From the IMG/VR virus record IMGVR_UViG_3300004463_000226, positions 1-64,000 of that record: 64,000 bases of DNA; one strand, 5' to 3'. Shown one piece after another: positions 7,412 to 64,000 of this stretch. Every line of letters starts with the position of its first letter. Position 1 is the first letter of the stretch. Below the pieces are notes generated by a model. It did no database searches, was not told the origin of the DNA, and was given only the letters and a program-made list of their open reading frames with translations. The translations under genes and the position numbers were made by a program.

Positions 7412-10054
7412 ATGATTGATGAGCAACTATTTAAAGAAGCTGAGAGTAACAGTACGTTTGATTTAGAAGCTCTAGAGAAATCACTGGCTGATATTAAGCA
7501 AACATCATTTAATTATCTATATGAATTTCAGAAGAACGCCGTCAACTATAAAAAATTTGACTTTACAATGTCTGATTTTCAATTAGATAAAAACACCAGT
7601 CGTACTCGAACAGCATCTTATCCAAAAAAATATGTTATTCATATACCAAGCAATTTCATATCCCAAAGAAAACGTTATATGTATAAGCAGTCAGCTCACT
7701 ATGGTAAAGAATTGAATGTATTCCAAGTGGCTAATGATCCTAATGTATTTACACGGGTTTATTTAGTATTCATTGATGGTAAATACTATGATACCATCAA
7801 TATCAGATGTAAAGAGAACGTTACTGAACTTATCTTAGATATTCAAGATACTAAGATAAATCCTACAGGCGTACCACAAACTCATTTTAACACCTTAGTA
7901 CAGAATAATGCTAAGGTTACTGTATTCTTTGTACCAAATGCAACATATGGTCTATACAATACGAACTACAATGTGATGAAATTGTATAAGAACCAGCTTG
8001 CATTGAGCAACTTAAATATCTCTGGTAACTTAACTACTCAGACTCAATATATTACATTCATTAACACAAATGACTTATTATTTTCATCTGTTATCACAGA
8101 TACATCAAACTCAACAGACATGCTAAGATTCTATGATAACAATCTGAGAGCATTTGATAGTAAGTACGTTCATTTGAATGTATTCGGGTTTAGAAATTTA
8201 CTAGATCAATACAATATTCCTGGGGCAACAAAGTTCTTTAAGATACCCCTCCAGGATATGCCAGTACCTGTTGAAAATTTAATGATTTTCACAAATGATG
8301 CTGATGGGAATAAAAAGTTTGCGCATGATATAAGTGTTGTCTTACACTATCCTAATATATATGAGATAGTGGGCAATACTACAAATGCAAATTTAACAAT
8401 CTATGCTTTCTATTTTGATGATAGTACTTCTCAAGGTCTAAAGTTCAATAATGACTTGGATTTATATCAGAAATTATTTGGAAGTGATGTTGGAAGGTAT
8501 ATTAATAACACAATACCTGATGTTGTTAAATCGTACCAACCAAGCTCATATAGTTATGATATCAATGACTTCCAATCGTCAATTGAGTATAACGATCATC
8601 TTAAGTATAAGATTGATAAGTTAAAAACTTGGATTACAGAAAATCCTGAAGTTCTTCGATTGTATCTTAACAATCAGATCAAGACTCCTACAGGATTTAT
8701 AATTGATGTTGCTCAAGTTAATCTCTCATCTAAACTTCGTAATAATAACTTTGCTGAAGTTGACTACGAATATGAGAAGAAAATATTCTCGGAACCGAGA
8801 TATTTATTTATTTTATCCAACGGTTCAACGGATTTATATTCTGACGTTCGTTTCTATATAGATGGATTGTTATATGTTCCTGATGAAACATATAAGGATT
8901 CTGGATATGAATATTACTATATCCCAACAGCAATAGTTAAGTCTAACTCTATTATAGAAGTTGAAAGATTTAGTGAAATTGAGTTTCAGAAGATGGTAAC
9001 TCTTAATTCACCATTAGATAAGGTCATATTAAATCCTCGTTCAGACTGGACTTTTAATGCAACTGATATATATATAGTAGATCCTACTGTAAATAAATTT
9101 ATTAGTAGGGACTCCTTTAAAGTTGTTATTACTAGAAATAACATTGATATTGAACTAGACTCTTCATCTCTAAAAAGTATAAAGGGACCTATTGGAATCC
9201 GTATCACAGATCCAGCACTACTAGCTAGACCTGTGTATGTATTCATACGACGTCATATATATTTTGATGTCAGGGATATTAAAGAGAACGACGATATTGG
9301 TACAGTTTTCTCTTTCAGGTCAAAAACTAATTTCGATGTTAAAAATGTACGGGTATTTAAAAATGGTAGATTCTTACCTAGTTCTCTATATGATATTGAC
9401 TTTGAAAATAAAGTCAATGGTATGAACTTCATAACCCCACTTATCCGTAAACAAATTGGAGATAAGTTTGTAGTCGATTGTACACCATACAAATACAAGA
9501 CAGTAACAGAGATAAATTCTATTGATCCTACTGGGTTTGTAAACTTAAGGGGTATAGTCGATAAACCATTTGATTTAAAATGGTACGATGTTTATCTGAA
9601 TGGTAGACGTCTAAACAAGAATCAGATTGAAATAGTCTCCCCTACTCTCATCTACATTAAGAATGTGACCAGTCTTAAACATTTCATTCTTATAGAAAAG
9701 GATAGGGATACTGAATATTTCAATATAGGTGCAGCAAAAACAATCAACGATACTCTATGGGATGATAATTCTGAGTTTAAAATAGCTCTGAATAATAGAC
9801 CAACAATATCTGATAGTGAAACAGATATTGTCACTGAGTTAGAGAATTCAATTGAGCTTGAAAAGATGAAGATGTTCCTTGTAATTATCGGTAGGGAGAA
9901 GTTAGTTAATCCTGATGAATTTCAAATAACAGAGGAAGATCAACAAAGATTTCCTAATATGTTTAATCCTGCTCAGGACTTCTTCTTTATTGATCCAGAT
10001 GAAAATTTTGCTGCTGTTAGTAGAATAAAAATATTTCCTGAATTTAAGTTATAA
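7412..10054 (+). CDS. Large virion structural protein (baseplate/tail, jumbo phage type)
   Basis: 880 aa with repeated beta motifs (VFIDG, FYIDG, VFKNG, VYLNG); late-type promoter variant and GGAGG RBS; tail module context. Confidence 0.6.
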   Translation: MIDEQLFKEAESNSTFDLEALEKSLADIKQTSFNYLYEFQKNAVNYKKFDFTMSDFQLDKNTSRTRTASYPKKYVIHIPSNFISQRKRYMYKQSAHYGKELNVFQVANDPNVFTRVYLVFIDGKYYDTINIRCKENVTELILDIQDTKINPTGVPQTHFNTLVQNNAKVTVFFVPNATYGLYNTNYNVMKLYKNQLALSNLNISGNLTTQTQYITFINTNDLLFSSVITDTSNSTDMLRFYDNNLRAFDSKYVHLNVFGFRNLLDQYNIPGATKFFKIPLQDMPVPVENLMIFTNDADGNKKFAHDISVVLHYPNIYEIVGNTTNANLTIYAFYFDDSTSQGLKFNNDLDLYQKLFGSDVGRYINNTIPDVVKSYQPSSYSYDINDFQSSIEYNDHLKYKIDKLKTWITENPEVLRLYLNNQIKTPTGFIIDVAQVNLSSKLRNNNFAEVDYEYEKKIFSEPRYLFILSNGSTDLYSDVRFYIDGLLYVPDETYKDSGYEYYYIPTAIVKSNSIIEVERFSEIEFQKMVTLNSPLDKVILNPRSDWTFNATDIYIVDPTVNKFISRDSFKVVITRNNIDIELDSSSLKSIKGPIGIRITDPALLARPVYVFIRRHIYFDVRDIKENDDIGTVFSFRSKTNFDVKNVRVFKNGRFLPSSLYDIDFENKVNGMNFITPLIRKQIGDKFVVDCTPYKYKTVTEINSIDPTGFVNLRGIVDKPFDLKWYDVYLNGRRLNKNQIEIVSPTLIYIKNVTSLKHFILIEKDRDTEYFNIGAAKTINDTLWDDNSEFKIALNNRPTISDSETDIVTELENSIELEKMKMFLVIIGREKLVNPDEFQITEEDQQRFPNMFNPAQDFFFIDPDENFAAVSRIKIFPEFKL

Positions 10055-13868: not shown

Positions 13869-13887
13869 GTATGGTTTCCATACTCAT
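13865..13887. terminator. Bidirectional terminator between convergent genes
   Basis: ATGAGTATGG-TTT-CCATACTCAT flanked by A-rich and T-rich runs. Confidence 0.7.
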
Positions 13888-16028
13888 CCTTTTTTGCTTC
13901 GTAAACTTATCTTTGGTATACCTCTAAATTTATAGTTTCTTATAGCTTCATTCATGAAATGCTCATGTACATTGAAGTCGTTTCTTTTCTGTAGTATCTC
14001 ATAGTTACCTTTCAAATTCATCACATATGTATTTACTGAATCATTGAAATAGTTCTTTAAGATATCGAAAAGTTTATTAACAACTTCACTATCTGCAACA
14101 GGAACCATAATCTCAACCCGTCTATCTAAGTTTCTAGTCAGTAAGTCTGCACTAGAAATATAAATATTCGGATCTCCATTATTGTAGAAATAATATATCC
14201 TACTATGCTCTAAATATCTACCTATTATACTTCTTATTCTTATATTTTTATTAATAGGTTTCATAGAGCAAATTCCTCTGACAATAATATTAATCTGAAC
14301 ACCTCTTTCAGATGCTATATATAACTTCCGTATAATTCCCATATCTGATAAGGAATTGAGCTTTAATGTAATTGCTCCTTTCTTTCCTTTCTCAACATTA
14401 TTAATCTCTCGATCAATTAAATCATACAGTTTAGTACGAATGTTATAAGGAGAATAACAAACCTTAGATATTTCATCTCTAGGATCAGAGTAACCTGATA
14501 AGATATTAAAGATTGTAATAATATCTTCTCCAATTTTATTATTGGATGTAAAGAATGATAAGTCTGTATAAATACGTGCAGTCTTATCATTGTAGTTACC
14601 TGTTCCTACATGACAATATATTTTGAGTCCTGATTTCTTCTTAGATCTTCGTACAACAGCAATGAATTTACAGTGGGTTTTTAGCTCCTCTAATCCATAA
14701 ATTATTTTACATCCTGCTAGACGAAGTTTCTCAACTAGAGATATATTTCTATCTTCATCGAATCTAGCTTTAATCTCTAATAGAACATTTACCTGTTTTC
14801 CTTTTCTTGCTGCATTACATAAAGCCTCAACAATTGGAGAATCAGATGATGATACACGATATAGTGTCTGCTTGATAGCTAATACATCTTTATCTTGTGC
14901 AGCATGTTCTAGAAACTTTACTACAGGTTCAAATGATTCATATGGATGATGTAACAGAATATCGTTGTTATCAATAGCTGTAAACATATCATGCTCACCC
15001 ATAAGTTCTTCTGGATACTGTGGTTCAAATGATTCATATTCATATAAACCACTACGAATTGGCATACCTGATAAGAAAGATAAATCGACAATTGTACTTA
15101 CCTTATAAACATTTTTCTTATTCATGTCAAACATCTTTACTAACAACTTCAATAGTTGCTTTGGAATATCTGCACTAATATCCATGAAGATAGGATTACT
15201 ATTTTCACGTCGTTTTAAAGTCTGTCTCATACGGTCAATGATATATACATCCTTATTTGGATCTAATTCTATATCAGCTTCACGTACGATTCTCATACAA
15301 CCTCGATATATTATTTCTTTATTAATAAACACTCTATGGAGATTATTGAATATTATCTCCTCCAACAGAATATACTTTCTCTCCTCACTATCTTCTGATT
15401 CAATCTCATAAATTCTGTCTATACCTATATCTATAGGTATAATAGACACAACATTGTGATTTGGATTTCTCTTATCTTCTATACCAGCAATTATACTTAA
15501 CTGCTTAGAATGAATTAAGGGAAAATCCTTTGTAGTATCAAAAGTGATTGGAGTTATTAATGGATAAATTTGTCTAGTGAATAGCTTATCAACCTGAGAT
15601 TGTTCCTTCACTGTTAAGTCATGATACTTACATATAGAGATATTATTTTTCTCTAGTTTCTTTCGTATCTTGACATAACATTCTTCTTGGAGATATTTGA
15701 ATTTAACTATCTCCTTGAATAGTGCAGTATACTCATCCTCAGGTGTTAGACCAGAAATATCCATTACATAGCTTTCGTCGTATAACTTCTTTAACACAGA
15801 TGCAAATCGAACCATAATGAATTCATCAAGATTTGAGGCTGTAATTCCTAAGAATTTTAAACGCTCAAGTAACGGAACTTCATCTCTTATTGCTTGATGA
15901 AGAACACGTTTGTTGAATTCCATCCAACTCAATTCCCTATTGATATAGAAGTCTGGGTTGTTATAAATCGAGTTAAGCTCGTTTCGTTCTAAGTTGTATA
16001 TGTCTGCGATGTTCAATGTAGTATTCAT
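13884..16028 (-). CDS. ppk1: Polyphosphate kinase 1
   Basis: NRELSWMEFNKRVL, SNLDEF, HHPYESF, IKQTLYR, EIKARFDE, KTHCK (phospho-His), HVGTGNYN, GRYLEHSRIY and SADLLTRNLDRRVE are all present. Likely start 16028. Confidence 0.96.
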   Translation of the reverse strand: MNTTLNIADIYNLERNELNSIYNNPDFYINRELSWMEFNKRVLHQAIRDEVPLLERLKFLGITASNLDEFIMVRFASVLKKLYDESYVMDISGLTPEDEYTALFKEIVKFKYLQEECYVKIRKKLEKNNISICKYHDLTVKEQSQVDKLFTRQIYPLITPITFDTTKDFPLIHSKQLSIIAGIEDKRNPNHNVVSIIPIDIGIDRIYEIESEDSEERKYILLEEIIFNNLHRVFINKEIIYRGCMRIVREADIELDPNKDVYIIDRMRQTLKRRENSNPIFMDISADIPKQLLKLLVKMFDMNKKNVYKVSTIVDLSFLSGMPIRSGLYEYESFEPQYPEELMGEHDMFTAIDNNDILLHHPYESFEPVVKFLEHAAQDKDVLAIKQTLYRVSSSDSPIVEALCNAARKGKQVNVLLEIKARFDEDRNISLVEKLRLAGCKIIYGLEELKTHCKFIAVVRRSKKKSGLKIYCHVGTGNYNDKTARIYTDLSFFTSNNKIGEDIITIFNILSGYSDPRDEISKVCYSPYNIRTKLYDLIDREINNVEKGKKGAITLKLNSLSDMGIIRKLYIASERGVQINIIVRGICSMKPINKNIRIRSIIGRYLEHSRIYYFYNNGDPNIYISSADLLTRNLDRRVEIMVPVADSEVVNKLFDILKNYFNDSVNTYVMNLKGNYEILQKRNDFNVHEHFMNEAIRNYKFRGIPKISLRSKKG

Positions 16029-16163
16029 CTTGAACCCCCATATGAATTTATTCACTGTTATAATATATAAATAAAAAGGTCATTCCTATGTTGAATACCC
16101 CTTCTAACTAAATGTTATATGATGAATAAAAAGACATGTAATGGGAGTTGCCCATTACATGCA

Positions 16164-42716: not shown

Positions 42717-43430
42717 TTAAATTTCCTCCTTTAATCTATCTAACATACTGTTCTGGGGCTTTTTACTTTTCACATAGACGCCATATCCCTCTTGAATTGC
42801 TTTATCACATAAAGCATTCTGTAGATAAATAAATAGAAACTGGTCTTTAGTGAGTTTAACCTTATTAAACTTCTCGAACTTCTTCTTCAAATCATCTACA
42901 TTCTTTTTAGCTATGTGTGAGTTAATGTGGAAGAAACTAACTGTATGACCAGCGTTACGTATCTTAGTGAGAAATTTAAAAGCCCTTTTAAATTCTTCCT
43001 GATGCATAACTGGTTGCTTAGTGCTTGATATAAACACACCTTTTTTAGCAGTACGTATCCAGTTATATATCCATTTAGTTAATGACATATAGCAAAGCAT
43101 TGAATCTGTGTAAAGCTTTATATTAACATTCTTAAGAACCCCGCCTTCAACGTATAACCAAGTATGCTCTAATGCATTTGCAATTGCATTGATTTCAGCA
43201 AACTGATTACTACCTCTGCGATATGTAAGATTCTTGTGGACAAGTTCTTTCTTATCATTGAAAAACCTAAATGAACTTATAGACAGATATTTCCGTCTAA
43301 CTTCATCTTCTGGATCTTTCTCCTCATCTTTTTTCTCATCCTCATTTTCTTTCTTAGGAAGCTCATCATCAAATGAGCCTCCGTCAGTAAATAGTAATAT
43401 TTCTTTAGTTAAATGCATATATTCACCCAT
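42717..43430 (-). CDS. rnhA: Ribonuclease HI
   Basis: LFTDGGS, NQFAEI.A, LYTDS, W...W, HINSH and N..CD give the DEDD catalytic set. Confidence 0.9.
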   Translation of the reverse strand: MGEYMHLTKEILLFTDGGSFDDELPKKENEDEKKDEEKDPEDEVRRKYLSISSFRFFNDKKELVHKNLTYRRGSNQFAEINAIANALEHTWLYVEGGVLKNVNIKLYTDSMLCYMSLTKWIYNWIRTAKKGVFISSTKQPVMHQEEFKRAFKFLTKIRNAGHTVSFFHINSHIAKKNVDDLKKKFEKFNKVKLTKDQFLFIYLQNALCDKAIQEGYGVYVKSKKPQNSMLDRLKEEI

Positions 43431-47315: not shown

Positions 47316-48041
47316 TTACGCAATGTTTTCAAAAGCTTTAAAGTTAGTCCGTAGAAAATCCACTATCGTTTCATGGATTGTATCTATAGGTAACATTTCA
47401 CCATTAGGTGTACATTCAATACGATGCCAGCCGCAGTACTTAATAACACGGTCTCTGACACCATATACATCTTTTAGATGGTCAATATTTTCATGAATAT
47501 CTTCCATCGGTTTACCTTCATATCGCTTCATAATATTAGATACAGATATTTCAGGTTTTACATCCAAGTAGAACACTGCATCTGGATGAGGTAATCCTAA
47601 GTCAATATACTCAAGTTCCTCAATCCATTGAATATAACCTTCAATGTTATTCTTGTTAGTGAGGTTACCTGCTTGGTGAAGAATATTTGAAGTAGTATAT
47701 CTGTCACAGATTACATGTGTTCCTTCTTTGAGATGTTCAATGAGGGATTTACCGCTATACACCTGCTCAATAAATGATGAAACACGGTCAACAGCATAAA
47801 ACGATGATATCTGTTTAATATATTGGATATTGTCTTCCTGATGATACATGTTCTTAAACTGTCCGTCCAAGTATTTCCTAACAAGAACTGAAGATTCATT
47901 AGCATAGTTAGGAAATGATACAATAATAACAGGGATATTAGAAGCCTCTAGTCTTCTATATAACTTTATCGCCTGTGTATTTTTACCACTACCATCTAGC
48001 CCTTCAATGCCAATAACTCTTCCTGAATATCCTAGTGTCAT
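47316..48041 (-). CDS. tmk: Thymidylate (dTMP) kinase
   Basis: IEGLDGSGK.TQ P-loop, FP.Y, YAVDR, CDRY..SN, P.PD.VFYLD. Confidence 0.92.
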   Translation of the reverse strand: MTLGYSGRVIGIEGLDGSGKNTQAIKLYRRLEASNIPVIIVSFPNYANESSVLVRKYLDGQFKNMYHQEDNIQYIKQISSFYAVDRVSSFIEQVYSGKSLIEHLKEGTHVICDRYTTSNILHQAGNLTNKNNIEGYIQWIEELEYIDLGLPHPDAVFYLDVKPEISVSNIMKRYEGKPMEDIHENIDHLKDVYGVRDRVIKYCGWHRIECTPNGEMLPIDTIHETIVDFLRTNFKAFENIA

Positions 48042-52559: not shown

Positions 52560-53102
52560 TCACTCCTTTAATAGTTTTATACATTGGTCTAACGATGCTC
52601 TTATTTCCTTCCTTATATTCTCTTGCTGTCTCGTACAAGCTCTTTTAATGGCTTTATAATCAATAACAGTTCTTTCATATAGACCAAAGAAATACTTGTA
52701 TTGTTTTATTACATCTTTTGATTGAAATCGTATTCTTATTATATTGGTTTTATCATTAGAGAAATCTATTATTTTGAAATCCACATAAAATATGTTCTCC
52801 CAGTCAGCATGAATACTGTCCCACTTAACTATACACGGATTTCTGTGTCTAATATTACCTGTAGCATAATTCTTATCTACCATTATAGCTAGTGAAGGTT
52901 CAAAATAATTTGTATCACCTTCAGTTATATCAACTGCTTGACTTGTATAAAATCTCCTGTTACTTTTTATTTCCAGAAATATCATTAGATTCACAAATGA
53001 AAATAAATCACTTACAATTGTATCCCTCATATTAAAACTATTGAATAGGTATCTTGTTTTTTCTATGTCCATAGGTTTTTTTAAAAAAGATGGTAGCTTC
53101 AC
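52560..53102 (-). CDS. Hypothetical protein
   Basis: GGAGG RBS, GTG start. Confidence 0.6.
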   Translation of the reverse strand: MKLPSFLKKPMDIEKTRYLFNSFNMRDTIVSDLFSFVNLMIFLEIKSNRRFYTSQAVDITEGDTNYFEPSLAIMVDKNYATGNIRHRNPCIVKWDSIHADWENIFYVDFKIIDFSNDKTNIIRIRFQSKDVIKQYKYFFGLYERTVIDYKAIKRACTRQQENIRKEIRASLDQCIKLLKE

Positions 53103-53209
53103 TTATTTCCCTCCAATGCAATGTATTCTTATAATAAAGTTAAGAGGATTATAAATACTTACTAAAAGACTTTAAATATAGACATAGGATTATTTTCCTA
53201 TGTCCGCCA

Positions 53210-53335
53210 GATAATATTATCTATTTTTCATTAAATAAATATATAATAACATTAATAAGTAAATAATACTATTAAATGTTATTATATATACTAATATTAT
53301 CTATTTATATAATCTCTATATATCTCATAAAAAAT
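53210..53335. other. Extremely AT-rich tract with a 15-bp inverted repeat (candidate DNA-unwinding element)
   Basis: ATATATAATAACATT (53239-53253) / AATGTTATTATATAT (53275-53289); ATTATCTATTT direct repeats at about 53216 and 53296. Confidence 0.5.
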
Positions 53336-53515
53336 CTCCAACATATATCTTTATATCCTTGCCCCCCCTATCCCCCCCATAACACCGTAAAAGGGTGCTA
53401 TGAGGAGAACAAGGTGTGTGTCTGGGATAAATAAAGATACGACGAATGAAAGTCCATCTTTTCATCAATGCGATATTTTTGTTGGGAGACAAATATATCT
53501 AAGTTTGACTAGATT
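53320..53515 (-). ncRNA. Candidate ~200-nt structured RNA with a 21-bp G-U-rich helix and a G7-AUA-G7 tract
   Basis: AACA-TTAAAG-TA at 53515-53526 (-). CCUUGUUCUCCUCAUAGCACC pairs fully with GGUGUUAUGGGGGGGAUAGGG only on the - strand (6 G-U pairs). Outer stems UAUCUUUAU/AUAAAGAUA and UCUCC(C)AACA/UGUUGGAGA. Confidence 0.7.
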
Positions 53516-53565
53516 ACTTTAATGTTCCCCATTAGTAAAAAATAATTGAACATTTTTTTGCTTAC

Positions 53566-53780
53566 AAAAACCCCTAATAGATCCAGCGAGGTCTATTAGG
53601 GAATTTTTGCATATGGGAAATGTGATAGAGCATGAGTACCAGTTTTTTATCTCCCAAGCAGTTAGATAAGAATTTGGTTCATGGTCATGGTTCTGAAACG
53701 TCCGCGTTTCAACAGTCTGTTTGATTTTAATATATGCCTTCTATACAGGGGCCTGGTAATACTTGGAAATATATCCAATT
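53566..53780 (-). ncRNA. Candidate ~215-nt multi-branched RNA with its own promoter and terminator
   Basis: AACA-TAATAG-TA at 53780-53791. Closing stem UACCAG/CUGGUA around three hairpins (including UGAAACG-CGGA-CGUUUCA and UUAUCU/AGAUAA). Terminator CCCUAAUAGA/UCUAUUAGGG plus a U-run; no ORF with an RBS. Confidence 0.65.
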
Positions 53781-53926
53781 ACTATTATGTTACTATAGTA
53801 ATTAAATAAAATTAAAAAAATAGACCTTGCCAATAAGCAAGGTCGAAATAATATAAAACATAGGAAGAAATAAATTTAAAATGGAGTTAAATCTATTACT
53901 TATCTTGTTTAATAATTAGTAACTTA

Positions 53927-55255: not shown

Positions 55256-55365
55256 AATGCTTTACCCCCAAATTATTATTGATTATTATATTACTTACAA
55301 ATATAATATATACTTGACATTTTTCAAAAAACTAATTTTTTAAAATTTATCTTAAACATAAAATT

Positions 55366-55624: not shown

Positions 55625-58600
55625 TTGCTATCTGTTTCGGAGATACCACACTTAAGGGTATATAAGCAAAGAACTATACTTCCTTTTGATAAAAAGGTTC
55701 AAAGTATGTATGGAATGGTATTTATCAATAACAATTCAATTGAGTCTGCTATTGAGTTAATGAATAGTCAGGCTATTTCTTCAGCTGGTAAATATCATAT
55801 CTATTATCTAGATAACCTTTATTCAGGAAGATTATTCGGTAAATCATACCGAGAAGTATTAAATAAAGAACGTGAAGAAATTTACGCTGAAGTTGAATCA
55901 AAGGCAAAGTTTATTAAGACAGAGAAATCTCTTATCTCAGTTAATAGCCGTAACATGTATTTTGATCTTCAGCACCACAATGATATTTTCTTTAGATTAG
56001 GAAATAGAACGTCTTCCTATATTAAGAAAGTGAATGATTATGCTTCTTTCCTTAAAGATATTATTAATGACGAAAGATTCTCTAAGTATAAAGAGAAGAT
56101 TGTCGCCATTAATGTCGATACATGGGTATCACAAGTTAGGAAGGAAATGACTAAAGGTTCTAAATTAGATAATCCTATTATGATTATCTATTATGCTCTT
56201 ATCAAATCTCTAGAGGAGTTTAAATCAATTGGTAATATTGATATTATTCTATACTCTGGAAGTTCAATGGTAAGAGTGAATCCTTCATTATGTGACAAGA
56301 AGTCGTACTATTTATATCGCCAAGAGGTTTCTAAACTTCATACTTCTATTACATTAGAAGATGAAGCCACCATTGAAAAGCAAGTTGAGCTCGATGCTGT
56401 TTATCAAAAAGTAGCCAAGAATTTCTCAGAGCACTTTAACTTCACTGGCGATGATGAAGAAGAAGGAGATGAGGAAATTGAGGAGAAAGCTAAAGAACGT
56501 CTTGAAGAGATTGTTGAAGAGGAGCCTGAAGAAGGTGTTACTGGTAGGGAACTAGAGAAGGAACTTACAAACAAGCTAATCAATGACGAGAAACTTCTCA
56601 AAGATGTTTACTCATATACTCAAGAGAAAAAGACTGGAAATTCAGCTGTTTCTTCAAAGCGCGACCAGGAACTAAGAGATAAACAAAAACAAATTAAAAT
56701 TGAAAATATGACTATTGAGGATATTAGAAATATTAACTCTAAGACAGTTAAACTGGACAAAGTTGATGTTTCTACTAAGGTTAAAACGACTAATAAGAAT
56801 GTTACGACAATTCATTATCCTCATTTTGAAAAGTCATATAATGAGCATTTATTGAAGAAGGATATGATTGATGTATTAATGCATCTTAATGACAGTTCAA
56901 TTCCTGTATTTGTCCGCAATATTGATGTTGTTGATAGTTCAGACGAATTGAACCATAAGGAAACTTATACTGTCGACTTAGAAGATGCTAATCGTGTTCG
57001 CCACCGTTTAAAATTCGATATGCCTAAATTTACTGACGATAAGTTCATGTACCTAAATGGTAATAAGAAACTCATTGTCAAGCAGCTTTATATGAAACCT
57101 ATTGTCAAAAATGGTCCAGATGAAGTTCAGGTTGTAGGTAGCTACAATAAGATCTTTATTCGCCGTCATGGAGGAAAGGTTTCTGCTAAAATAGAAAGAT
57201 TTAAAAAGGCTGTCTTAAAAGAAATAAAAGGTGTTGTTGTTAAATATGGCAATAATATTTCTACAAATAATGATTTTAAGACTACTATTGAGTACGATGA
57301 AATTTCTAAAGACATTACTTATATTCGTATAGGAGTTACGGAGTTTTACTTTAACCAAGAAGAAGTTCAGAAGTTGGTCAAAGACCGTAAGATAAAAATA
57401 AGTGATGATGAAATGTGTATTGGATTTATTAATAAAAAAGATCCAATCACTGTTAAATACGATACTCAACGCGTTGGTCCAGATATGGATATTGTTGACT
57501 TCATATTGTCAGTCGGTAAAGGTGAACTAGTTACTAGTTTCGATGCTGCAACAACAGGTAAGAAGTTTATCTATAGCCGCGCAACGGTTATGTCTAAACA
57601 AATCCCATTAGTTTTACTATTAGGGTACTTTGAAGGATTGAGTTCTGTTTTACGTAAAGCAGGCATTAAACATTACTTCACAGATACACGTCCTAAATTA
57701 GATGTTAATCAAGGTTCTATACAATTTGCAAATGGACATCTAGTATTTGATAGATATCCTTTTGAAAACTCATTACTAATGAATGCTTTTGCTGATATTC
57801 CAACCAGAGCATTCAACTATGAGGATTTTGATGAAAGAGAAGTTTACCTATCTATTTTTGACGTTATGTTTAAACAACGTAACTTAGGTAACGCTCTCTT
57901 GAACTACTATGAATTTATGATTGATCCTATTATGAAAGAAGTATTAGAGGATCTGAACTATCCAACAGGATTCGTAGAAGTTATGTTATATGCAAACGCA
58001 TTATTAACAGATAACTCATTTATTCGTGAGACTGATATGAGTAACTATCGTGTTCGTTCTAATGAGTTAATTAATGCATATCTATATAAAGCAATTGCTG
58101 ATGCTTATGGTTCTTATCGTGCAACAGCTAATAACAATAACCCAGTTAAAATCTCTATTCCACAAGATGCGATTACTAAGAAACTATTAATGTCTCAAAC
58201 TGTTGAAGACTATAGTATTCTTAACCCTATTGTTGAATTGGAGAAATCTCGGGCTATTACTCCTAAAGGACATTCTGGTATGAACTTGGATGATGCCTAT
58301 ACACAGGATAAACGTGCATTCGATCCATCTATGATGGGTATTATGGCAATGTCAACATCTCCTGATGCTAACTGTGGTATCGTTCGTGAGTTAACTCTAG
58401 AACCTAATATATTAAGTCCACGGGGTTATATTGACATCAAGAATGACAAACTTAAAGAATTAACTGATGCTAACTTGTTCTCTGCGGCAGAATTATTATC
58501 TCCTCTCGGAGTTTCAAGGGACGATAGTATCCGTACAGCAATGGCAACTAAACAATCAAAACACATTATCCCTATCGAGAAATCTTCTCCAGTTCTAATC

Positions 58601-59773
58601 TCAAATGGAGCTGAACAGATTATACATTATCATTTATCTAATGACTTTACAGTTGTTGCAAAGTATGATGGTAAAGTAGTGGAAGTCAATGAAGATGCAG
58701 GGGTAATGATTGTAGAATACAGCGATCCTAAAGGTATCCCACAGCCAGGTGGTGGAAAGAAAACAATACTCCATCAAGCTGTCGATATTAGTCCTAGAGT
58801 AGTGAAAAACGGTGCGGGTGGATTCTTCTTAACAAACCAACTTACAAGTAACTATAAAGTTGGTCAGAAGTTTAAGAAGAGTGATATTATTGCATCTGAT
58901 AAGAAATTCTTCACTAACTCAGATATTCATGGAAACCGATTCAATATCGGATCATTGCAGAAAGTAGCATGTATGAGTACGTTTGCAACTTATGAGGATT
59001 CTACATTTATTACTAAGAAACTGAGTGAAGAGATGGCTTCAGACATCGTAATGCAGAAAGCAATTACATTAGGTAAGAATGCCAATGTTGACTTTATTGT
59101 CAAAGTAGGTGACCATATTTCTGTAGGTGATGAATTAATCCGTTTCGAGTCTTCATTCGAAGACGATTCACTTAATAAGTTCTTAACACATATTGGAGAT
59201 GAGTTAAAAGAGGATATCAAGTCTCTAGGTAAAACTCCGATTAAATCAAAGTATACTGGAGAAGTTGTTGATATCAAAATATACTCTACAGTAGATCTAG
59301 ATGAGCTATCTCCAACATTGAGAAAGCTTGTTAGTGCATATTATGCTCAAATTAATAAAAAGAAAAAGACTATCGAGAAATACGATAAGTCTAATGAAGT
59401 TCATAAACTAGGAGTTCTATTAAATGAGCCTACTAGTAAGATTGAAACTAAAGATGGTAAGGTTAAAGGTATGGAAGTTGGGGAAGGTGTATTAATTGAG
59501 TTCTATATCAGCCATAAAGACATTATGGGTGTTGGTGATAAATTAACATTCTTCACAGCCTTAAAATCTATCATCGGGGATGTTATCCCAGAAGGTTACG
59601 AACCATATTCTCAATTCCGTCCTGAAGAAGAGATATCTTCATTCATAGCACCTGGAGCTGTATTAGCACGTATGACACCATCTATCTTGTTAACAATGTT
59701 TGGTAATAAGGTATTGGTTGAGCTTAAACGCCAATTACAGGAAATATATACAGGTAAACCATGGAAACCGTAA
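55625..59773 (+). CDS. Phage RNA polymerase beta subunit (large N-terminal/middle part), probably virion RNAP
   Basis: FMYLNG...Q, TSPDANCGIVRELT (TPEG.N.G equivalent), DD..RTAMATKQSKH, YEDS, GDKL...K and ARMT motifs. About 450-aa N-terminal extension; late-type promoter at 55584; size similar to phiKZ gp178-type subunits. Confidence 0.92.
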   Translation: MLSVSEIPHLRVYKQRTILPFDKKVQSMYGMVFINNNSIESAIELMNSQAISSAGKYHIYYLDNLYSGRLFGKSYREVLNKEREEIYAEVESKAKFIKTEKSLISVNSRNMYFDLQHHNDIFFRLGNRTSSYIKKVNDYASFLKDIINDERFSKYKEKIVAINVDTWVSQVRKEMTKGSKLDNPIMIIYYALIKSLEEFKSIGNIDIILYSGSSMVRVNPSLCDKKSYYLYRQEVSKLHTSITLEDEATIEKQVELDAVYQKVAKNFSEHFNFTGDDEEEGDEEIEEKAKERLEEIVEEEPEEGVTGRELEKELTNKLINDEKLLKDVYSYTQEKKTGNSAVSSKRDQELRDKQKQIKIENMTIEDIRNINSKTVKLDKVDVSTKVKTTNKNVTTIHYPHFEKSYNEHLLKKDMIDVLMHLNDSSIPVFVRNIDVVDSSDELNHKETYTVDLEDANRVRHRLKFDMPKFTDDKFMYLNGNKKLIVKQLYMKPIVKNGPDEVQVVGSYNKIFIRRHGGKVSAKIERFKKAVLKEIKGVVVKYGNNISTNNDFKTTIEYDEISKDITYIRIGVTEFYFNQEEVQKLVKDRKIKISDDEMCIGFINKKDPITVKYDTQRVGPDMDIVDFILSVGKGELVTSFDAATTGKKFIYSRATVMSKQIPLVLLLGYFEGLSSVLRKAGIKHYFTDTRPKLDVNQGSIQFANGHLVFDRYPFENSLLMNAFADIPTRAFNYEDFDEREVYLSIFDVMFKQRNLGNALLNYYEFMIDPIMKEVLEDLNYPTGFVEVMLYANALLTDNSFIRETDMSNYRVRSNELINAYLYKAIADAYGSYRATANNNNPVKISIPQDAITKKLLMSQTVEDYSILNPIVELEKSRAITPKGHSGMNLDDAYTQDKRAFDPSMMGIMAMSTSPDANCGIVRELTLEPNILSPRGYIDIKNDKLKELTDANLFSAAELLSPLGVSRDDSIRTAMATKQSKHIIPIEKSSPVLISNGAEQIIHYHLSNDFTVVAKYDGKVVEVNEDAGVMIVEYSDPKGIPQPGGGKKTILHQAVDISPRVVKNGAGGFFLTNQLTSNYKVGQKFKKSDIIASDKKFFTNSDIHGNRFNIGSLQKVACMSTFATYEDSTFITKKLSEEMASDIVMQKAITLGKNANVDFIVKVGDHISVGDELIRFESSFEDDSLNKFLTHIGDELKEDIKSLGKTPIKSKYTGEVVDIKIYSTVDLDELSPTLRKLVSAYYAQINKKKKTIEKYDKSNEVHKLGVLLNEPTSKIETKDGKVKGMEVGEGVLIEFYISHKDIMGVGDKLTFFTALKSIIGDVIPEGYEPYSQFRPEEEISSFIAPGAVLARMTPSILLTMFGNKVLVELKRQLQEIYTGKPWKP

Positions 59774-61968: not shown

Positions 61969-62125
61969 AATTAATTCCCCCTAGGTTTATTATTGATTTT
62001 GAATATATTATTTATATTCACTATTATAATATATAGGTGATATTGCCGACTTTACGAATTAACATTTATTACCAGTAAAACAGTTATGTAAGAAATACAT
62101 ATCAATGAGAGGGGAACATACTAAA

Positions 62126-63073
62126 ATGGGTCAATTTGATAAAGAATGGAATAGGGTATTAGAGAATATTATGTTAAATGGAGTATGGCAGAAAGAAGAA
62201 CATGTCCGTGCTAAATGGGACGATGGTACTCCAGCTCCAGCTAAATTTGTTACAGGAGAAAAGATGGTATTTGATAATAGTGAAGCTCTAGTCCCAACGA
62301 CTAAAGAAATTAAACGTAAGAGTCCATTACGTGAACTAAAATGGATCTGGTTCCTTAAATCAAACGTGGTTCAGAAACTTCGTGATTTGGGAAGTAGTAT
62401 TTGGGATAAATGGGAAATTAAAGAAGGTGAATGGACAGGTACAATTGGTCCAGCTTACGGACATCAATTAGGTAAACAATGTAGGAAATTTCCAGTAGAA
62501 AAACTTCGCTGGGAACATCTACATCCTGAGCATGCTGTTGAGTTAAGACAAATGATAGAGGATGCTTTAGCACAAGGTTTTATTATTAAATATGTAATGC
62601 TGGATCAGGTAGACTTCCTCATCCAAGGTCTTCTTACTAACCCTGGTTCTCGCCGATATATTCTATCACTATGGGGTATTGAAGATCTTGACTACATGGC
62701 ACTAGAACCATGTGTATGGAAGACAGGGTGGCAATATGTTGATGGTAAAATTGATTTAATAACTGGTGTACGTTCAAATGATATCTGTGTAGGAAATCCT
62801 TTTAATGTGTTTCAATATCAGGTGTTATGGAATCTTATCTGTCAGGTAACAGGTCACACACCAGGGAAGATTCAATTTGATCTCGATAATCCACATATTT
62901 ATGACAGACACATTCCTGAGGCTATGAAACAGTTAGTGTATCCTCAAAAAACAGCTCCAAAACTTTGGATTAATCCTGATATTAAAAACTTTTATGACTT
63001 TAATCCAGATACTGATGTTAAATTGATTGACTATGAACACGGTCCAGACCGTTACTATGAGGTGGCTGAATAA
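62126..63073 (+). CDS. thyA: Thymidylate synthase (B. subtilis ThyA / phi3T ThyP3 type)
   Basis: M.QFDK, R.KW.DGTPA, IWD.W, IG.AYG.Q, SRR, ALEPCV (catalytic Cys), RSND...GNPFNVFQY, HIYDRH. Confidence 0.96.
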   Translation: MGQFDKEWNRVLENIMLNGVWQKEEHVRAKWDDGTPAPAKFVTGEKMVFDNSEALVPTTKEIKRKSPLRELKWIWFLKSNVVQKLRDLGSSIWDKWEIKEGEWTGTIGPAYGHQLGKQCRKFPVEKLRWEHLHPEHAVELRQMIEDALAQGFIIKYVMLDQVDFLIQGLLTNPGSRRYILSLWGIEDLDYMALEPCVWKTGWQYVDGKIDLITGVRSNDICVGNPFNVFQYQVLWNLICQVTGHTPGKIQFDLDNPHIYDRHIPEAMKQLVYPQKTAPKLWINPDIKNFYDFNPDTDVKLIDYEHGPDRYYEVAE

Positions 63074-63237
63074 TGAAATATATTCGTAGACTTATTCATA
63101 AGATGATTGTTGCATATTTATTAAAATCAGGTAAAACTTTCCACCACGGTAAGTATGAAGACGGTGGTCAGTATGTAGTATTAATGGATGAGTATCAATA
63201 TAACTTATTCACCAATTATGTAGATAACGGTTATTAA
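63073..63237 (+). CDS. Small hypothetical protein, 54 aa
   Basis: TAATG stop/start overlap with thyA; GAGGTGG RBS; terminator at 63242-63269. Confidence 0.6.
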   Translation: MKYIRRLIHKMIVAYLLKSGKTFHHGKYEDGGQYVVLMDEYQYNLFTNYVDNGY

Positions 63238-63380
63238 TTAAATAGAGTATAGGGAAACCTATACTCTATATTATTTGTTACTATAGGTGTAACAAATATG
63301 TAGAACGAATAAGTCAATTCATATATCGTTTATATATTATAAAGACGTGAATCAATAATAATTCATAGTCTATCAAGGAG

Positions 63381-63647
63381 GTGAACGATATGAAAGGTTT
63401 TAATTCTGATGAGTTCTGTATTGATGATGTTCTTTCTAACCTTAAAAAGTTCAAGAAGAAAGATAAAGGTAAGAAAAAGAAAGAAAGTCATGATGAAAAA
63501 GTAGCTAGAGAAGTTGGTGAACAGCTTAAAAAGAATAAGCGTAAAGCAGCTGATGATTTAGAGCGAGAAGCTCATGAAGATCTAATGCAATACCAACGTG
63601 AAAAAGCTATTGAAGATGGAGCAATGTATGTTAATATTCCGTTGTAA
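63381..63647 (+). CDS. Charged hypothetical protein (early)
   Basis: Early motif at 63331, leader box at 63350, AGGAGG RBS. Confidence 0.65.
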   Translation: MNDMKGFNSDEFCIDDVLSNLKKFKKKDKGKKKKESHDEKVAREVGEQLKKNKRKAADDLEREAHEDLMQYQREKAIEDGAMYVNIPL

Positions 63648-63718
63648 TAAATTATTACACGGTAAACTTTATAGTAATGGTATTAACCAATTTTACTTAA
63701 TATTAGGAGGAAACTAAA

Positions 63719-64000
63719 ATGGCACAATCTTTTACTGAAGTATTCGAGGAAATTAAATCTAATCTTACAACATCTAAAGCAGGTAAAACAGTTAAATCAT
63801 TCAACCGCAGTCAATTCGACAAGCTGGCTAAAGCTTATTTGAACTCTACTGACTATACAATTGAAGTAGCTGGCACTAAAGGCGGCGAATTAGTTAAAAC
63901 TACAATTGAGCCTGTAAAAGCATTCCGCGGTATGCTTAAACGTATCTTGATCGAGTTCGGTGTGGACAAGCAAGAAGCTGAAACAATTCTTGATTCTTCT
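63719..64000 (+). CDS. Hypothetical protein, 3'-truncated by the window (MAQSFTEVFEEIK...)
   Basis: AGGAGG RBS, AACT-N6-TA motif at about 63665, and a frame open to the window end. Confidence 0.7.
   Translation, partial: MAQSFTEVFEEIKSNLTTSKAGKTVKSFNRSQFDKLAKAYLNSTDYTIEVAGTKGGELVKTTIEPVKAFRGMLKRILIEFGVDKQEAETILDSS

Follow-up and report, generated by a model that had tools for sequence, protein, structure and literature searches.

We examined an ORF-free gap of a jumbo phage in which a promoter-like motif points through two adjacent G-runs into extremely AT-rich DNA. The DNA examined (hereafter 'the window') comprises the first 64,000 nucleotides of IMG/VR contig UViG_3300004463_000226 (234,335 bp; window and contig coordinates coincide), and represents 27% of the genome. 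The original prediction, made from the sequence alone, was that the minus strand of this gap encodes a promoter-driven, structured G7-AUA-G7 RNA running into an AT-rich cruciform, and that the region is a candidate RNA-primed (R-loop) replication origin.

The locus and its setting

The window derives from an uncultured, AT-rich (33% GC) AR9/PBS1-like jumbo phage that carries a multisubunit RNA polymerase beta-like gene (RNAP-beta). Its nearest cultured relatives are Bacillus PBS1/AR9-like, Staphylococcus S6/MarsHill-like and Listeria LPJP1 phages, at 35–39% amino acid identity; the RNAP-beta of AR9/PBS1 is only 38–39% identical. The 824-bp gap is the largest complete ORF-free gap in the window (a 927-bp gap at 63074–64000 is cut by the window end). 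It lies inside a 40-kb run of minus-strand genes, 2 kb from the main divergence of gene orientation. The features of the locus are collected in the table.

Positions of features at the twin G-run locus and of associated genes (window coordinates)
Feature	Position	Strand	Remarks
ORF-free gap	53103–53926		824 bp
Unit A, probably a small RNA of the same cluster	53565–53791	-	Late-type motif AACATAATAGTA (53791–53780), then a ~215-nt ORF-free stretch ending at the terminator below; fold z about -3.3 on both strands, so the strand rests on the promoter and terminator
Intrinsic terminator	53572–53601	-	12-bp GC-containing stem plus a T-run; reads as a terminator on both strands; ends the upstream unit and insulates the twin-G unit from upstream transcription
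Late-type (AR9 nvRNAP-like) promoter motif	53515–53526	-	AACATTAAAGTA; inferred start site is the A at 53515
6-bp hairpin	53497–53514	-	At the inferred 5' end of the RNA
Two enclosing helices	53334–53490	-	53440–53425 with 53359–53345, and 53490–53480 with 53343–53334; close the whole domain in the minimum-energy and centroid folds
21-bp RNA helix	53366–53414	-	Uninterrupted; 5' arm 53414–53394 (C/U-rich) with 3' arm 53386–53366 (first G-run, AUA linker and part of the second G-run); 6 G-U pairs; 7-nt loop
Twin G-run G7-AUA-G7	53362–53378	-	Non-template (sense) strand; C7-TAT-C7 on the plus strand
U6	53329–53334	-	Directly after the outermost helix; a possible 3' end of the RNA in this phage only
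AT tract, candidate DNA unwinding element	53211–53335		9.6% GC; exact 15-mer direct repeat (53212–53226 and 53292–53306, 80 bp apart); inverted repeat (53239–53261 / 53267–53289; 23 nt, 87%)
9-bp hairpin	53181–53205	-	GACATAGGA / TCCTATGTC; between the AT tract and the promoter below; role unknown
Sigma-70-like promoter of the next gene	53176–53148	-	Promoter-like site
RNase HI gene	42717–43430	-	PF00075, E 4e-11; PHROG 531; could process an R-loop primer (association only)
RNAP-beta-like gene	55625–59773	+	

Sequence and predicted structure of the minus-strand unit

We first examined each element of the original description and found every one of them to be present, so that the observation itself is confirmed. 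The promoter motif fits the AR9 non-virion RNA polymerase (nvRNAP) late-promoter consensus AACA-(6N)-TA/G, of which the last base is the start site (PMC5312081). RNA folding of the minus strand from 53515 to 53330 gave -62 kcal/mol and a z-score of -5.85, with none of 200 shuffled sequences folding as well, whereas the plus strand gave a z-score of -1.92; for the hairpin alone the corresponding values were -4.9 and -1.0. When the same sequence was folded as DNA the asymmetry was weaker (z -2.8 against -1.7), so the structure is an RNA property. The second pairing register that had been proposed (CCUUG.. with ..G7-CAAGG) is visible in the sequence.

The twin G-run contains the only G or C runs of six or more in the 64 kb, where about 0.1–0.4 runs of seven are expected from composition. 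The adjacent AT tract is both the AT-richest and the thermodynamically least stable 125 bp of the whole window (-115.8 against -125.6 kcal/mol for the next). Its 15-mer was considered as a genome-wide motif, but it occurs only locally. The U6 that directly follows the outermost helix was not part of the original description; in this phage the RNA could therefore end at the edge of the AT tract. It does not correspond to a canonical intrinsic terminator: a terminator scan called none between 53572 and 53103 on the minus strand, and the U6 follows only a long-range closing stem, 35 nt after the hairpin, rather than a compact GC-rich hairpin.

The whole gap is base-for-base identical in six independent assemblies and the G-runs are internal in position, which excludes a poly-G assembly artefact. 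A protein-coding role also found no support: only short ORFs of 40–55 codons are present (including a 46-codon frame), none has the GGAGG-type ribosome-binding site that real genes here have, and the region shows no reading-frame conservation in relatives.

Searches for known families returned no match. No Rfam family (riboswitches, ribozymes, 6S, Y RNA, tmRNA, retron msr and others) reached its gathering threshold in the window or in six relatives, the best hit on the minus strand of the element at E ≤ 10 had E 3.3, and no tRNA or tmRNA was found; a CRISPR-DR13-like hit at 53706–53731 (E 3.4) is attributable to chance. Searches with blastn and megablast against 50,697 phage genomes found no match even at E ≤ 10, and exact scans for G7ATAG7 and G7N3G7 in IMG/VR and GTDB recovered only the source contig plus unrelated GC-rich or repeat-element hits.

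Conservation of the module in related phages

Conservation of the helix or G-runs in relatives had been named in advance as a point on which the prediction could fail, and we sought related loci. The two closest flanking genes were of no use as anchors: the downstream neighbor found only itself in a word-based search of 5.8 billion proteins, the exact-match cluster of the upstream neighbor holds only itself, and the contigs recovered through them were the same phage with zero substitutions and so gave no covariation information. IMG/VR relatives found with a single-protein query were too distant (42–44%). A search with RNAP-beta, in contrast, yielded homologs at 55–78% identity, whose contigs were retrieved.

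Seven relatives (designated here by their locus labels, L247 to L308) carry twin G-runs on the strand opposite to RNAP-beta and 1–2 kb upstream of it, the position equivalent to that in the window (G7-ATA-G7). These are, with the identity of their RNAP-beta to that of the window, G5-TA-G5 in L247 (78%), G6-TTT-G6 in L248 (72%), G6-ATA-G6 in L249 (67%), G6-TTT-G6 in L250 (68%), G5-TA-G5 in L253 (62%), G5-ATATA-G5 in L305 (62%) and G6-TTT-G6 in L308 (63%). There is one copy per locus. Wider synteny is kept (a dTMP-kinase-like gene and others), but the genes immediately flanking the element are not homologous. PBS1 was also examined as a comparator; its locus is not syntenic and has no twin G-runs.

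The order and orientation of the parts are the same in every case examined. In 8/8 phages an AACA-N6-TA motif (consensus about AACAWWAAAGTAAT) lies 11–136 nt upstream of the twin G-runs, which are always on the sense strand of that promoter; the chance per locus is 0.08–0.15, with a product of 5e-8, although the loci are not fully independent and the match is to a motif only. In the window and in the four relatives scanned (L248, L249, L250 and L308) a canonical terminator sits just upstream of the promoter and none follows the G-runs, and those four relatives have no U-run equivalent to the U6 of the window.

The tract just downstream of the G-runs is the AT-richest 100 bp of its 14–64 kb locus in 6/8 phages (GC 0–11%; L250 has about 200 nt at 0–1%) and ranks second in the other two. 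These tracts are conserved in composition but not in sequence, and the inverted repeat originally described as a cruciform is not conserved. The one sequence feature that they share is an oriented excess of AGATAA (13 against 3.1 expected, with its complement not enriched), a motif that was found post hoc and comes mostly from one relative.

A hairpin maintained by compensatory changes in five of eight phages

Covariation across related phages had likewise been proposed as a check of the helix. In the window, L248, L249, L308 and L253, a C/U-rich upstream arm pairs with the twin G-runs and their linker, with z-scores of -4.0 to -5.7 on the minus strand against -1.0 to -3.4 on the plus strand. 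Alignment of these hairpins with MAFFT misplaced the arms, and we instead used a single-sequence covariance model and a linker-anchored comparison. The model, built from the window alone, recovered L248 (E 0.005, all 21 pairs standard) and L249 (E 1.8) at the expected places. The linker is always paired and its partner co-varies (UGU/AUA, UAU/AUA, GAA/UUU (twice), AAA/UUU and UA/UA), while the loop-proximal stems differ completely yet stay paired. In an ungapped 16-column core of four sequences, 62/64 cells pair, and 4/16 columns plus most loop-proximal columns carry double changes; the set of eight phages, some of them closely related, was too small for a formal R-scape-type test. Sliding the C/U-rich arm by 1–3 nt still left 55–77% of cells paired, which quantifies the two registers. 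An outer CCUUUG/CAAAGG-type helix also encloses the hairpin in L248 and L249.

The remaining three phages show no significant hairpin involving the G-runs (L250, z -1.7; L305, +0.1; L247, +0.3), yet they keep the twin G-runs and the AT tract. In L247, the closest relative, the homologous hairpin survives without G-runs, and a separate G5-UA-G5 sits 11 nt after a second promoter, next to the AT tract. The universal core is therefore the promoter, the twin G-tract and the AT tract, with the hairpin as a frequent addition selected at the RNA level. The G-runs stay G even where they pair with U, so they are constrained beyond base pairing.

A candidate transcription-activated origin

The interpretation of the locus as a transcription-activated origin is partly supported: the proposed architecture is real and conserved, while nothing in the analysis shows replication, an R-loop or even the transcript. 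We tentatively favor, with less than even confidence, a transcription-activated, R-loop-type replication origin shared by a clade of AR9/PBS1-like jumbo phages. [quoted passage not shown] The very stable rG:dC hybrid, and/or a DNA:RNA hybrid G-quadruplex built from the two RNA and two DNA G-tracts, would keep the transcript on the template, and the R-loop would spread into, or hold open, the adjacent AT tract. RNase HI would then trim the RNA to a 3'-OH that primes leftward leading-strand synthesis, co-directional with the 40-kb block of minus-strand genes. In five of the eight phages the G-tracts could instead be locked into the long G-U-rich hairpin, which would act as a competing, slippery alternative structure that tunes how often the transcript stays on the DNA.

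The sequence anatomy, its statistical exceptionality, its strand specificity, its conservation and its covariation are shown by the analyses described above, whereas the transcript and its ends, promoter activity, the R-loop or G-quadruplex and any role in replication are inferences; there are no transcript, R-loop or replication data, and K+-dependent quadruplex formation, a transcription stop and an RNA-to-DNA transition were not assayed. Several details argue for caution. The hairpin would sequester the G-tracts, and its compensatory changes show selection on the RNA itself; the closing stem plus U6 precedes the AT tract in the window, so that the RNA may end there; the promoter is of the late class; and the unit is the last member of a cluster of small promoter-plus-terminator units, and could be one more RNA gene. 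A GC-skew inflection had also been suggested as a test: the cumulative minimum of the window lies near 55–56 kb, 2 kb from the element, but coincides with the switch of gene orientation and is uninformative. Because most of the genome lies outside the window, a better origin candidate elsewhere is not excluded.

Full-text literature searches found no described replication origin for jumbo phages with their own multisubunit RNA polymerases. The element offers a precise, conserved and experimentally tractable candidate of about 330 bp with three separable parts. If it is an origin, it links the unusual transcription machinery of these phages to replication initiation and shows convergent use of a twin G-tract, as at the mitochondrial origin. 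A stronger form of this reading, which we consider unlikely but not excluded, is that the clade starts DNA replication the way mitochondria do, with a transcript from the phage polymerase trapped by the twin G-tract (as a hybrid G-quadruplex or R-loop) at the edge of an extreme AT unwinding element and the slippery hairpin acting as the off-switch; this would be the first origin defined for AR9/PBS1-like phages and a bacterial-virus counterpart of CSB II. If it is not an origin, it is still a new, conserved, strand-specific structured RNA with constrained G-tracts, at the end of a previously unnoticed late-promoter small-RNA cluster.

Comparison with characterized systems

The layout matches that which defines bacteriophage T4 oriF (uvsY) and oriG (34), namely a phage promoter plus an A+T-rich unwinding element; there, transcripts form persistent R-loops and the primer, the sequence of the element is free and can be swapped for a heterologous one, and a phage RNase H is thought to process the primer (PMC3016281). 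The T4 origins are about 100 bp, with the unwinding element directly after the promoter and without G-tracts or a long hairpin, whereas here 45–185 nt, containing twin G-runs and usually a long hairpin, lie between the two. The polymerase would be a phage multisubunit RNAP rather than host RNAP with MotA.

The twin G-tract resembles mitochondrial CSB II; in both, two adjacent long G-tracts separated by 1–5 nt lie on the non-template strand downstream of a promoter. Two or more such tracts generally form co-transcriptional DNA:RNA hybrid G-quadruplexes, which at CSB II stabilize the R-loop and stop transcription to make the primer, with either the mitochondrial or the T7 polymerase (PMC3488243; PMC4176368). 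There is no common ancestry, and in the phage the G-tracts are usually paired to an upstream C/U-rich arm in the RNA and are followed by an extreme AT tract. If the origin reading holds, the element would be a promoter-plus-unwinding-element origin with a CSB II-like G-tract.

The ColE1 RNA II primer is also a promoter-driven, highly folded pre-primer RNA, in which a G-rich segment helps it to stay hybridized to a C-rich template stretch near the origin and RNase H makes the 3' end. RNA II is about 550 nt; no antisense RNA I-like partner, Rom-like control, or sequence or Rfam similarity was seen here. At the phage T7 primary origin, tandem promoters for the phage's own RNA polymerase are followed by an AT-rich region, and the window likewise has two tandem late-type motifs upstream of its AT tract. 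T7 uses a single-subunit RNAP and its origin has no G-tracts or hairpin, and in the window a terminator separates the two promoters.

Alternative explanations

The strongest alternative, although in our view unlikely, is a stand-alone structured non-coding RNA of ~185 nt (53515 to ~53330), made from a late promoter as the last member of the small-RNA cluster and acting, for example, by binding a protein or another nucleic acid through its exposed or switchable G-tracts, with the AT tract being only the spacer or regulatory zone before the next gene. The strand-specific fold, the compensatory changes, the 5' hairpin, the closing stem plus U6, the neighboring units with the same promoter type and terminators and the lack of a plausible ORF agree with this reading. 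It is disfavored by the three phages that keep the G-runs and AT tract without a significant hairpin, by the separation of hairpin and G-runs in L247, by the absence of a terminator after the G-runs in the relatives scanned and by the lack of an Rfam match, and it does not explain why the adjacent DNA is the AT-richest of the locus in 6/8.

Less likely still is a long structured 5' leader, in which the late promoter drives the downstream genes (53102 to 51749), the hairpin stabilizes or regulates the mRNA and the A/U-rich stretch acts as a translational enhancer or attenuator. No canonical terminator lies between the promoter and the next gene in the window or the four relatives scanned, the downstream genes have no early-promoter motif of their own (the nearest are at 55312 and 51579), AR9 5' UTRs reach 491 nt (PMC5312081), and the alternative registers could form a switch. 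However, the downstream genes are not homologous among the eight phages whereas the 'leader' is conserved, no other gene in the 64 kb has such a leader, a 100–300-nt stretch of 0–11% GC is far beyond what a leader needs, and the window has its own sigma-70-like promoter and a hairpin between the AT tract and the gene.

A DNA-level site unrelated to initiation (a packaging (pac) site, a partition or nucleoid-protein binding site, or a transcription insulator, recognized as C7-TAT-C7 plus bent or easily melted AT DNA) is improbable. The single copy per locus, the G-runs conserved as sequence, the AT tract conserved as composition, the oriented AGATAA repeats and the break of one related assembly inside the homologous AT repeat (as well explained by poor assembly of AT repeats) would fit it, but it does not explain the conserved promoter aimed at the site or the RNA-specific G-U pairing with compensatory changes, and no terminase gene is nearby. 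A single-stranded DNA hairpin is also less likely, since the DNA folds are weak and up to 10 of about 31 pairs would be G-T mismatches.

Promoter motifs and neighboring units

The window also uses an AR9-like early motif, TATATATTAT, which occurs 13 times, 12 of them just upstream of minus-strand genes, and resembles the AR9 early consensus AAATATATATTAT. It is absent from the gap, which rules out early promoters in the AT tract. The late-type pattern AACA-N6-TW is enriched in intergenic DNA, with 31 of 150 occurrences falling in 12% of the sequence, and precedes many genes; the bare 12-mer pattern, however, is not enriched window-wide, and the promoter call at the twin-G unit therefore rests on context and on conservation. 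The gap holds two tandem units (unit A and the twin-G unit), each starting with AAU plus a 6-bp hairpin, and L308 has about 10 such tandem units.

Additional features of the window and related loci

We also observed a cluster of small ORF-free units, each comprising an AACATA-N4-GTA late-type promoter, 80–110 nt and a hairpin followed by a T-run. The locus of one relative (L308) contains about 10 such units in tandem, several of which share the hairpin CCCATACCAGTTAGGTATGGG, while the window contains one (unit A). The unit bearing the twin G-runs is always the last of the cluster. No tRNA or Rfam match was found.

An early-promoter-like motif, TATATATTAT, which resembles the AR9 early consensus, is present at 13 sites in the window. 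It lies in front of genes and is often followed about 12 nt later by a conserved 5'-UTR element, AATCAATAATAA (10 copies). A 9-bp hairpin and a sigma-70-like promoter (TTTAAA-17-TATAAT) are located between the AT tract and the gene at 53102, which is odd for a phage group thought to be independent of host RNA polymerase.

Coordinates of additional features (window positions unless a relative's locus is named)
Feature	Position	Strand
Small ORF-free units, L308	7799-9305	-
Small ORF-free unit (unit A)	53565-53791	-
Small ORF-free unit, L248 (relative)	9050-9150	-
Early-promoter-like motif (examples)	55312, 51579, 49472, 48502, 34928	-
Early-promoter-like motif (example)	63331	+
9-bp hairpin	53181-53205	-
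Sigma-70-like promoter	53148-53176	-
AT repeat at contig start, L251	1-130	
Thymidylate-synthase-like gene	62105-63073	+
Thymidylate/deoxynucleoside-kinase-like gene	47316-48041	-
Polyphosphate kinase 1 gene	13884-16055	-

In the AT tracts of the window and of relatives L247, L248, L249, L305 and L308, AGATAA (read on the transcribed strand) is enriched, with 13 occurrences against 3.1 expected (0/500 shuffles), while its reverse complement is not. These could be iteron-like protein sites, although the motif was found post hoc and comes mostly from L247. A further 212-kb contig (L251, equivalent to L287; RNAP-beta 63%) starts inside an ATTAATAATAAT-type AT repeat 3.1 kb upstream of RNAP-beta, where the homologous AT tract would lie. 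The assembly broke there, and no twin G-run is present in the part of the locus that was recovered.

The 17-mer G7ATAG7 recurs in unrelated bacteria (loci L127–L246, from GTDB genomes, and L007 and L010, from IMG/VR), with flanks that are unrelated to the phage element. In Comamonadaceae MAGs it comes as inverted pairs 300–470 bp apart (MITE-like), in cyanobacteria, Nitrospira and others it appears as C7-N3-6-G7ATAG7, and in L007 it is part of a 53-nt tandem repeat.

The thymidylate-synthase-like and thymidylate/deoxynucleoside-kinase-like genes of the window are both syntenic in relatives, and bear on whether this clade, like AR9/PBS1, has non-canonical pyrimidines in its DNA. The phage also encodes a full-length polyphosphate kinase 1, containing all four PPK1 Pfam domains (E down to 2e-69).
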